Below, piece by piece: positions 451 to 63,816 of a DNA stretch of 64,000 nucleotides (positions are counted from its first letter, which is position 1; every line of letters starts with the position of its first letter). Location: NCBI RefSeq assembly GCF_006345805.1, contig NC_043014.1, positions 3,472,001-3,536,000 on the forward strand. Reading direction: 5' to 3'. A program made the translations under genes and the position numbers. Source of the stretch: Octopus sinensis. Taxonomy: Eukaryota. The notes below the pieces were generated by a model, which did no database searches, was not told the origin of the DNA, and saw only the letters and a list, made by a program, of their open reading frames with translations.

Positions 451-624
451 CTCTTTGGTGACACTTCGGTCCATACCATCCTGGTGCACAACCTCTTGGA
501 CAATAACCAGTCTGTCTGTCACATGGTTCTCTATTTCTACATTGGCCACATGTTCTACAGCCTCTGCGGTCGACATATTCCCCAGGAGGACATGTAGTTA
601 CAGGATAACGAGTCTCAGTTTTTA
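451..624 (-). CDS. Exon l (174 bp, 8 Cys)
   Basis: [58 protein letters not shown]; catag / gtaaa. Confidence 0.85.

Positions 625-63816: not shown

Follow-up and report, generated by a model that had tools for sequence, protein, structure and literature searches.

An octopus locus of phase-1 module exons: a probable octovafibrin gene and an adjoining array of draper-like/MEGF10-type modules

The locus and its gene model

The stretch of DNA considered here, 64,000 nucleotides (nt) of the Octopus sinensis contig NC_043014.1 (positions 3,472,001 to 3,536,000 of the forward strand; hereafter the window), carries on its minus strand a long series of exons for cysteine-rich extracellular modules. 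By sequence comparison the first 28 of them would encode a counterpart of octovafibrin, which is the one major protein in the egg threads and egg cases of O. bimaculoides (XP_014771937.1, ~135 kDa; Wonderly et al. 2023, PMC10336842); this counterpart is taken to be the orthologue, with a recent paralogue being less likely. About three quarters of an octovafibrin gene, from an Octopus species near O. bimaculoides, probably lie in the window, with the remaining twelve exons, 29 to 40, most likely standing outside the major thread product.

The gene model was obtained by scanning both strands for stop-free, cysteine-rich frames, which gave 40 ordered exons on the minus strand, from position 63816 down to 451. 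Each of them is bordered by AG and GT splice sites, counts a multiple of three nucleotides and begins and ends in phase 1; the outer limits follow from the acceptor of exon 1, which makes it start at 63816, and from the donor of exon 40, which makes it end at 451. When spliced, they form a frame of 5529 nt, i.e., 1842 complete codons, with zero stops. The same scan of the plus strand returned cysteine-rich frames that were microsatellite artefacts only, and for this reason the model is not regarded as a product of chance. It comprises 25 EGF exons, of which 24 have 111 nt and one has 114 nt, a C-type lectin-like domain (CTLD) split over two exons of 192 and 222 nt, and 13 exons of 147–195 nt for other cysteine-rich modules. 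Pfam recognized the EGF repeats with an E-value of 2e-68 and Lectin_C with 32.3 bits against a cut-off of 22.6, and found no match in ten other open reading frames (ORFs) of the window, nor did Rfam and tRNA scans of the window. A make-up of symmetric phase-1 exons is classical for extracellular proteins assembled by exon shuffling. The longest intron of the model, 7.4 kb, lies between exons 28 and 29, and exon 40 ends with a phase-1 donor; therefore, the module array extends past the window.

An earlier note, made from the letters of the window alone, had proposed 40 symmetric phase-1 exons in one open frame, and this was borne out by the borders, lengths, phases and lack of a stop. The limits that it gave, 451 and 63816, were the same, and the length that it put at ~1843 residues was computed to be 1842 codons. 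The donor of exon 10, GTTCGT, is poor and scores −2.1 bits, whereas the other donors average 10.1. Exon 10 (48920–49030, minus strand) is symmetric, so skipping it would preserve the frame, and no published peptide lies over it.

Comparison with octovafibrin

The published architecture of octovafibrin is a signal peptide, a CTLD, 29 EGF repeats and a second CTLD, and the protein was described as ending in this C-terminal lectin domain; its repeats are 37 residues long, with cysteines at positions 5, 10, 16, 25, 27 and 36, a frequent D or N at position 3 and Y or F at position 23, and none is calcium-binding (PMC10336842). The same signature is found in the window, where the array is unbroken and all 25 EGF repeats show the spacing C-x4-C-x5-C-x8(9)-C-x-C-x8-C. 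Position 3 is D or N in 23 of the 25 repeats and position 23 is Y or F in every one, and the calcium-binding consensus [DN]x[DN][EQ]C occurs in 0/25. As in octovafibrin, a long array of 37-residue, non-calcium-binding EGF repeats with this cysteine spacing is followed by a CTLD right after the last EGF.

The comparison was made with the 22 tryptic peptides, obtained by tandem mass spectrometry (MS/MS), that are given in Table S1 of the octovafibrin paper (PMC10336842), together with the published architecture. Nineteen of the 22 map in order on exons 1–28, with 246 of 274 residues identical (~90%), and three of these cross predicted exon junctions, i.e., a 13-residue peptide at 25>26, a 38-residue peptide (CCSLK...WVGAK) at 26>27 and a 22-residue peptide at 27>28. 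Three splice junctions of the model are in this way backed at the protein level by peptides from a sister species. The other three peptides, all of EGF type, were found in no frame of the window; they fit nonetheless, because about four EGF repeats must lie upstream of it. The window differs from octovafibrin in that it holds 25 of the 29 EGF repeats and no N-terminal part, and in about 10% of the residues compared; the signal peptide, the N-terminal CTLD and the ~4 other EGF repeats are predicted to lie upstream of position 64000.

The statement in the earlier note that the protein matched no named gene thus fails for exons 1–28, given the ordered MS/MS peptides and the repeat signature. It was correct in seeing a lineage-specific extracellular matrix protein of cephalopods that consists of phase-1 modules and extends beyond the window at the 5′ end. 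A search of the literature for octovafibrin, for its accession and for EGF proteins of cephalopod egg cases found no second primary source.

The lectin-like domain and the module that follows it

The CTLD encoded by exons 26 and 27 aligns over its full length to the CTLDs of CD23 and tetranectin. It has seven cysteines, HPK in place of EPT/EPN (EPT in CD23) and HLY in place of WND, and none of the EPN, QPD and WND motifs of the primary Ca2+ site is present within it. The domain is therefore unlikely to be a sugar-binding lectin. The missing Ca2+ and sugar motifs, the odd number of cysteines and the presence of two EGF repeats with a seventh cysteine suggest that it may be a module for protein–protein assembly and cross-linking.

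A direct joining of EGF to CTLD is also seen in the selectins and in the G3 domain of the lecticans, and modules of the selectin/lectican type are bounded by phase-1 introns, as they are in the window. In contrast to the window CTLD, which lacks EPN/QPD and WND, the CTLDs of those proteins are Ca2+-dependent lectins, and the number and order of the domains differ as well.

The protein goes on past the CTLD. In addition to the peptide that crosses junction 27>28, the peptide DSVGCEPR and an 11-residue peptide are identical to the sequence of exon 28, which places at least one MEGF10/draper-type module after the "C-terminal lectin domain". This module is not mentioned in the octovafibrin paper, although the peptides of that paper cover it, and nothing like the 12 further module exons of the window is described there (PMC10336842).

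Table 1. Exons of the model and two further features on the minus strand. All exons have AG/GT borders and phase 1-1; fractions are identical residues over the length of the O. bimaculoides peptide.
Feature	Positions	Strand	Description	Evidence
Exon 1	63706..63816	-	First EGF of the window, probably the fifth of 29; 111 nt	AG/GT, phase 1-1; peptide FTCHCR 5/6
Exon 2	62697..62810	-	EGF, 114 nt, 9-residue third loop	Splice borders, frame
Exon 3	60367..60477	-	EGF	Splice borders, frame; peptide CRPGYLGTDCTFDYCSDGPK over exons 3-4, 13/20
Exon 4	58779..58889	-	EGF	Splice borders, frame; peptide NSGTCYVVGK 8/10
Exon 5	57192..57302	-	EGF	Splice borders, frame
Exon 6	54436..54546	-	EGF	Splice borders, frame
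Exon 7	53894..54004	-	EGF	Splice borders, frame
Exon 8	52647..52757	-	EGF	Splice borders, frame; peptide KGSVYTCICQIGFK 11/14
Exon 9	50775..50885	-	EGF	Splice borders, frame
Exon 10	48920..49030	-	EGF, weak donor GTTCGT	Splice borders, frame
Exon 11	47669..47779	-	EGF	Splice borders, frame
Exon 12	46430..46540	-	EGF	Splice borders, frame
Exon 13	44867..44977	-	EGF with 7th Cys (APGYCGTLC)	Splice borders, frame
Exon 14	42875..42985	-	EGF	Splice borders, frame; peptide HYECSCR 7/7
Exon 15	41332..41442	-	EGF	Splice borders, frame
Exon 16	39870..39980	-	EGF	Splice borders, frame
Exon 17	36918..37028	-	EGF with 7th Cys (GICNCNG)	Splice borders, frame
Exon 18	34772..34882	-	EGF	Splice borders, frame; peptides NDGTCQDMEESFR 12/13 and CDCKPGYCGPLCTK 13/14
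Exon 19	32919..33029	-	EGF	Splice borders, frame; one 13-residue peptide 13/13
Exon 20	31678..31788	-	EGF	Splice borders, frame; peptide QGLSFVCCK 9/9 with a one-residue gap
Exon 21	31133..31243	-	EGF	Splice borders, frame
Exon 22	30170..30280	-	EGF	Splice borders, frame
Exon 23	28575..28685	-	EGF	Splice borders, frame
Exon 24	28044..28154	-	EGF	Splice borders, frame
Exon 25	26778..26888	-	Last EGF	Peptide ANGYICDCIEEYLGKR 12/16; 13-residue peptide 12/13 over junction 25>26
Exon 26	25953..26144	-	First half of C-terminal CTLD	Pfam Lectin_C 32.3 bits; SYEGAMNR 8/8; CCSLK...WVGAK 34/38 over 26>27
Exon 27	24759..24980	-	Second half of CTLD, without EPN/QPD and WND	Peptides of 16 (15/16), 23 (22/23) and 13 (12/13) residues
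Exon 28	23431..23577	-	First 8-Cys MEGF10/draper-type module, no spacer	22-residue peptide 21/22 over 27>28
Read-through tail	23408..23430	-	(G)EIEIIL + TAG, if exon 28 is unspliced	Sequence
Signal-peptide-like open segment	21407..21515	-	Candidate first exon of a separate gene	Weak phase-1 GT, 1.8 bits; good Kozak context
Exon 29	15812..16006	-	Spacer + 8-Cys module	Splice borders, frame, Cys count
Exon 30	13106..13288	-	Spacer + 8-Cys module	Splice borders, frame; AlphaFold2 model
Exon 31	11950..12114	-	7-Cys "PDGYY" module, shortened spacer	Splice borders, frame, Cys count
Exon 32	11227..11412	-	Spacer + 7-Cys module, in ~1.4 kb tandem unit	Splice borders, frame, repeat comparison
Exon 33	9818..10006	-	Spacer + 7-Cys module, tandem unit	Splice borders, frame, repeat comparison
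Exon 34	8448..8633	-	Spacer + 7-Cys module, tandem unit	Splice borders, frame, repeat comparison
Exon 35	7090..7281	-	Spacer + 7-Cys module	Splice borders, frame, Cys count
Exon 36	6325..6501	-	Spacer + 8-Cys "PPGKY" module	Splice borders, frame, Cys count
Exon 37	3784..3951	-	Spacer + 8-Cys module, duplicate of exon 36	Splice borders, frame, repeat comparison
Exon 38	2759..2947	-	Spacer + 7-Cys module, duplicate of exon 31	Splice borders, frame, repeat comparison
Exon 39	2066..2251	-	Spacer + 7-Cys module, duplicate of exon 32	Splice borders, frame, repeat comparison
Exon 40	451..624	-	Spacer + 8-Cys module, phase-1 donor at end	Splice borders, frame

The cysteine-rich modules of exons 28 to 40

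All of the 13 cysteine-rich modules except that of exon 28 are preceded by a spacer of 10–17 residues. They had been described in the earlier note as 8-Cys laminin-EGF modules, and neither part of this description survived intact: six of the 13 do have eight cysteines, whereas seven have seven (the "PDGYY" type, in which the second cysteine is lost), and the laminin label was not supported. With the laminin EGF family (PF00053), the best score was 17.9 bits against a cut-off of 21, in one of two stretches of exons 29–40; the other stretch and module 28 had no Pfam laminin-EGF match. The nearest solved sequences found with a profile of the modules were, weakly, the EGF repeats of Tie2 and SCARF1. 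An AlphaFold2 model of module 30 was confident, with a mean pLDDT (predicted local distance difference test) of 82.7, and a Foldseek search with it gave nothing at E ≤ 0.001; the top matches were the cysteine-rich domains of DLL4/Jagged, Eph and TNFR, and laminin structures were absent from the matches, although such small domains search weakly. The laminin-EGF label was rejected on the Pfam, PDB profile and Foldseek results together. What the modules do share with the laminin LE domain is the general form of an 8-Cys, EGF-derived module that ends in ...G.C..C..G..G..C; they differ from it by the score below the cut-off and by their solved neighbours, which are Tie2 and SCARF1 rather than laminin.

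The best matches of the 12-module array (exons 29–40) were a Haliotis "protein draper-like" (E-value 5e-50, 98% coverage) and a "MEGF10" (2e-44), and the array also matched molluscan receptor phosphatases and kinases in their ectodomains. Comparison by eye showed the motif CPDGYYG...CG.C...C.K.TG.C..GC..GW to be common to the window modules and the Haliotis proteins. These similarities point to modules of the draper-like/MEGF10 kind, which molluscs commonly have, and not of the laminin EGF kind. The likeness to the molluscan proteins, e.g., those of Haliotis cracherodii, lies in the tandem motif CP.G.Y...C..CG.C.....C...TG.C..GC..GW.G..C. The differences are that identity is only ~29–33%, that the window modules are split by their Pro/Lys/Glu spacers of 10–17 residues, that seven of them lack the second cysteine, and that the window shows no N-terminal domain, transmembrane segment or cytoplasmic tail, the 3′ end being outside it.

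The array has been shaped by repeated duplication. Exons 32, 33 and 34 lie in tandem duplicates of 1.35–1.4 kb that are 96–98% identical, introns included; the mean identity among the EGF repeats is 46%. Nested duplications were found in the 3′ array (7069–12228 and 2042–3037), where the block of exons 31 and 32 was copied as 38 and 39, and exons 36 and 37 also form a pair. The older pairs have ratios of non-synonymous to synonymous substitution (dN/dS) of 0.23–0.6, with frames, splice sites and core cysteines all intact. The diverged members (29, 30, 36/37 and 40), which differ at a proportion of synonymous sites (pS) of 0.35–0.64, have kept their frame, both splice sites and eight cysteines at a dN/dS of 0.23–0.53. 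Exons 29–40 are real, selected coding exons, in an array that has recently been expanding by tandem duplication.

Between the exons of the pairs 31/38 and 36/37 there are more differences than in the aligned intron, or differences that are mainly non-synonymous, with counts too low for selection to be claimed. A perfect two-copy tandem duplication of 422 bp lies at 16102–16957, some 100 nt upstream (in the sense of the gene) of the exon 29 acceptor; with an identity of 100%, it arose either very recently or as an artefact of the assembly.

A possible break between exons 28 and 29

The predicted mass of the protein is ~153 kDa without exons 29–40 and ~237 kDa with them, to be set against the published ~135 kDa, and the isoelectric point is 6.85 for exons 1–28 and 9.50 for exons 29–40. 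About 25 good tryptic peptides would be expected from exons 29–40, and Table S1 contains none of them, as against nine of the ten expected from the CTLD and module 28. If exon 28 were left unspliced, a stop would follow eight codons on, after seven read-through residues. The hexamers ATTAAA (23346–23351) and AATAAA (23206–23211), which follow exon 28, are uninformative, with AATAAA occurring about once per 640 nt on the minus strand. The open frame of the single protein of 1843 residues that the earlier note had proposed is real, but its continuity across the 7.4 kb gap conflicts with the published ~135 kDa and the C-terminal lectin end. Exons 29–40 would most likely lie outside the major egg-thread product, in an adjacent gene or in a minor long isoform. 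That the major egg-thread protein includes the array is quite improbable; that exon 28 is joined to exon 29 in some transcript is also unlikely, if clearly less so.

Several points weigh against a partial octovafibrin gene followed by exons that stand outside its major product. With regard to the identity of exons 1–28, it was judged from peptides and a description rather than from the full XP_014771937.1 or from transcripts, and 28 of the 274 peptide residues (~10%) differ, which leaves room for a recent paralogue. Protein database searches, made with the whole model and, against 1.84 billion representatives, with CTLD exon 27, found no close relative, although they are uninformative on novelty because cephalopod proteins appear to be absent from the searched libraries, in which other molluscs are present. 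Three matches of exon 27 among the 1.84 billion representatives were dismissed as repeat artefacts. With regard to the break, the missing peptides are weak evidence, since Table S1 lists only peptides assigned to the RefSeq model. Exon 28 looks like an internal exon: its donor, CAG|GTGAGA, is exactly in phase 1 and scores 7.7 bits on a matrix built from the other donors of the model, no more than one standard deviation from their mean and among the best 2.2% of GT sites overall, and exon 29, which is on the same strand, begins in phase 1. The gap itself contained no convincing first exon, the best candidate being equalled in 23% of shuffled sequences. Finally, no draper-like N-terminal domain was found in the gap when Haliotis and other molluscan relatives were compared with the window by tblastn; only the module exons matched.

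One rival explanation, to which somewhat less than an even chance is given, is a separate downstream draper-like/MEGF10 gene made up of exons 29–40, with its first exon in the gap between 16 and 23.4 kb and the exons for its transmembrane segment and cytoplasmic part past position 1. The closest relatives of the array are stand-alone Haliotis proteins, with a signal peptide, a module array, a transmembrane segment and a tail; a signal-peptide-like phase-1 segment in good Kozak context is present at 21515–21407, and the array is basic, unlike octovafibrin. However, this candidate does not rise above chance as a first exon and has a weak donor, the N-terminal domain of ~200 residues that the Haliotis relatives have is missing from the gap, and the spacers between the window modules are not seen in the Haliotis proteins.

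It is more doubtful that all 40 exons, and more, form one transcript, with octovafibrin or an isoform of it reaching at least ~240 kDa and having at least 13 C-terminal MEGF-type modules. The exons share one strand and compatible phases with no stop between them, exon 28, which is of the same module family, is placed in octovafibrin by MS/MS, its donor equals the other internal donors, and the gap lacks a significant first exon or N-terminal domain; unpaired cysteines in seven modules would moreover suit the disulfide cross-linking reported for the thread. Opposed to this are the published mass and lectin end, the lack of any array peptide in Table S1, the position of the array behind the longest intron and its very different charge, as well as a different evolutionary tempo (tandem units 96–98% identical versus 46% among the EGF repeats). 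A still more tentative proposal is an undescribed long form of octovafibrin, in which exon 28 would be spliced to a fast-expanding array of at least 12 basic, spacer-separated MEGF10-type modules, seven of them with an unpaired cysteine, that would act as an intermolecular disulfide cross-linker or as egg-stalk cement, with a copy number that varies among octopus species.

There is a small chance that the locus is a recent octovafibrin paralogue, possibly one present in O. bimaculoides itself, and not the orthologue of another species. The differing peptide residues and the three peptides not found in the window would agree with this. On the other side, the differences are evenly spread, all of the mapped peptides are in order, the unplaced peptides are of EGF type and fit the ~4 repeats outside the window, and an identity of ~90% would be ordinary between congeneric species. 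Very unlikely is the view of exons 29–40 as non-functional duplicates, the debris of an unstable tandem array that is in no product, for although the young copies diverge equally fast in exons and introns, some young pairs have a dN/dS of at least 1 and seven modules are without one conserved cysteine, all 12 exons are free of stops and frameshifts and the diverged members have kept their frame, both splice sites and eight cysteines at a dN/dS of 0.23–0.53.

Fibre assembly, cysteines and glycosylation sites

With exons 1–28 read, as preferred here, as the greater part of octovafibrin, and exons 29–40 as most likely outside the major thread product, the features of the model can be set beside what has been proposed for the fibre. 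In the egg case and the thread that tethers it, octovafibrin serves as a secreted structural protein, and its EGF repeats, with three disulfides each, form a long rod that provides stiffness and, by the unfolding of the EGF β-sheets, hidden length under load; the fibre dissolves only on reduction of its disulfides, and the authors proposed that the terminal lectin-like domains drive end-to-end assembly (PMC10336842). The CTLD would work in this by protein–protein contact, and its odd cysteines, together with those of a few EGF repeats, could be the sites of intermolecular disulfides. The seventh cysteines in EGF exons 13 and 17 are possible sites of this kind. In O. bimaculoides, the peptide CDCKPGYCGPLCTK, from the repeat that corresponds to exon 18, has an extra cysteine at the same GY-C position.

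The octovafibrin authors made a comparison with the sea-urchin fibropellins (PMC10336842). These are likewise secreted matrix proteins of reproduction or the embryo, with a long EGF array between terminal assembly domains. Their flanks, however, are C1s-like and avidin-like and not CTLDs.

Consensus sites of the Notch type were counted in the 25 EGF exons: O-glucose sites (C1-x-S-x-P/A-C2) are present in 17, O-fucose sites (C2-x4-S/T-C3) in 16 and O-GlcNAc sites in nine. Glycosylation is not discussed in the octovafibrin paper (PMC10336842).

Repeats in the window

The introns contain several families of interspersed repeats of 200–360 nt, in both orientations and 87–93% alike, that resemble short interspersed nuclear elements (SINE-like); examples are 29092–29449/37494–37851, 32416–32682/40109–40375/59093–59347 and 33131–33562/47139–47356/51126–51587. 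Many introns also have long microsatellites of the GATA/TATC and TG types, and these, together with the interspersed repeats, give rise to many spurious long ORFs. At 39106–39753 on the plus strand, three tandem copies of a 216 bp unit (99% and 74% identity) give an ORF of 215 residues with no family match.

Meaning of the locus

The core of the finding is an already known protein, and what is new is confined to the status of the downstream array. What looked like a giant orphan gene becomes the locus of a protein that is studied as a model of load-bearing, disulfide-locked EGF repeats. To the work on the protein, the exon map adds one EGF per phase-1 exon, a CTLD split between two exons and an MEGF-type module within the protein; it also adds a CTLD without sugar motifs and a seventh cysteine in two EGF repeats, which bear on fibre assembly and cross-linking. 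Knowing the membership of the array would show whether a second, basic component with odd numbers of cysteines exists, which would be of use to work on biomaterials.

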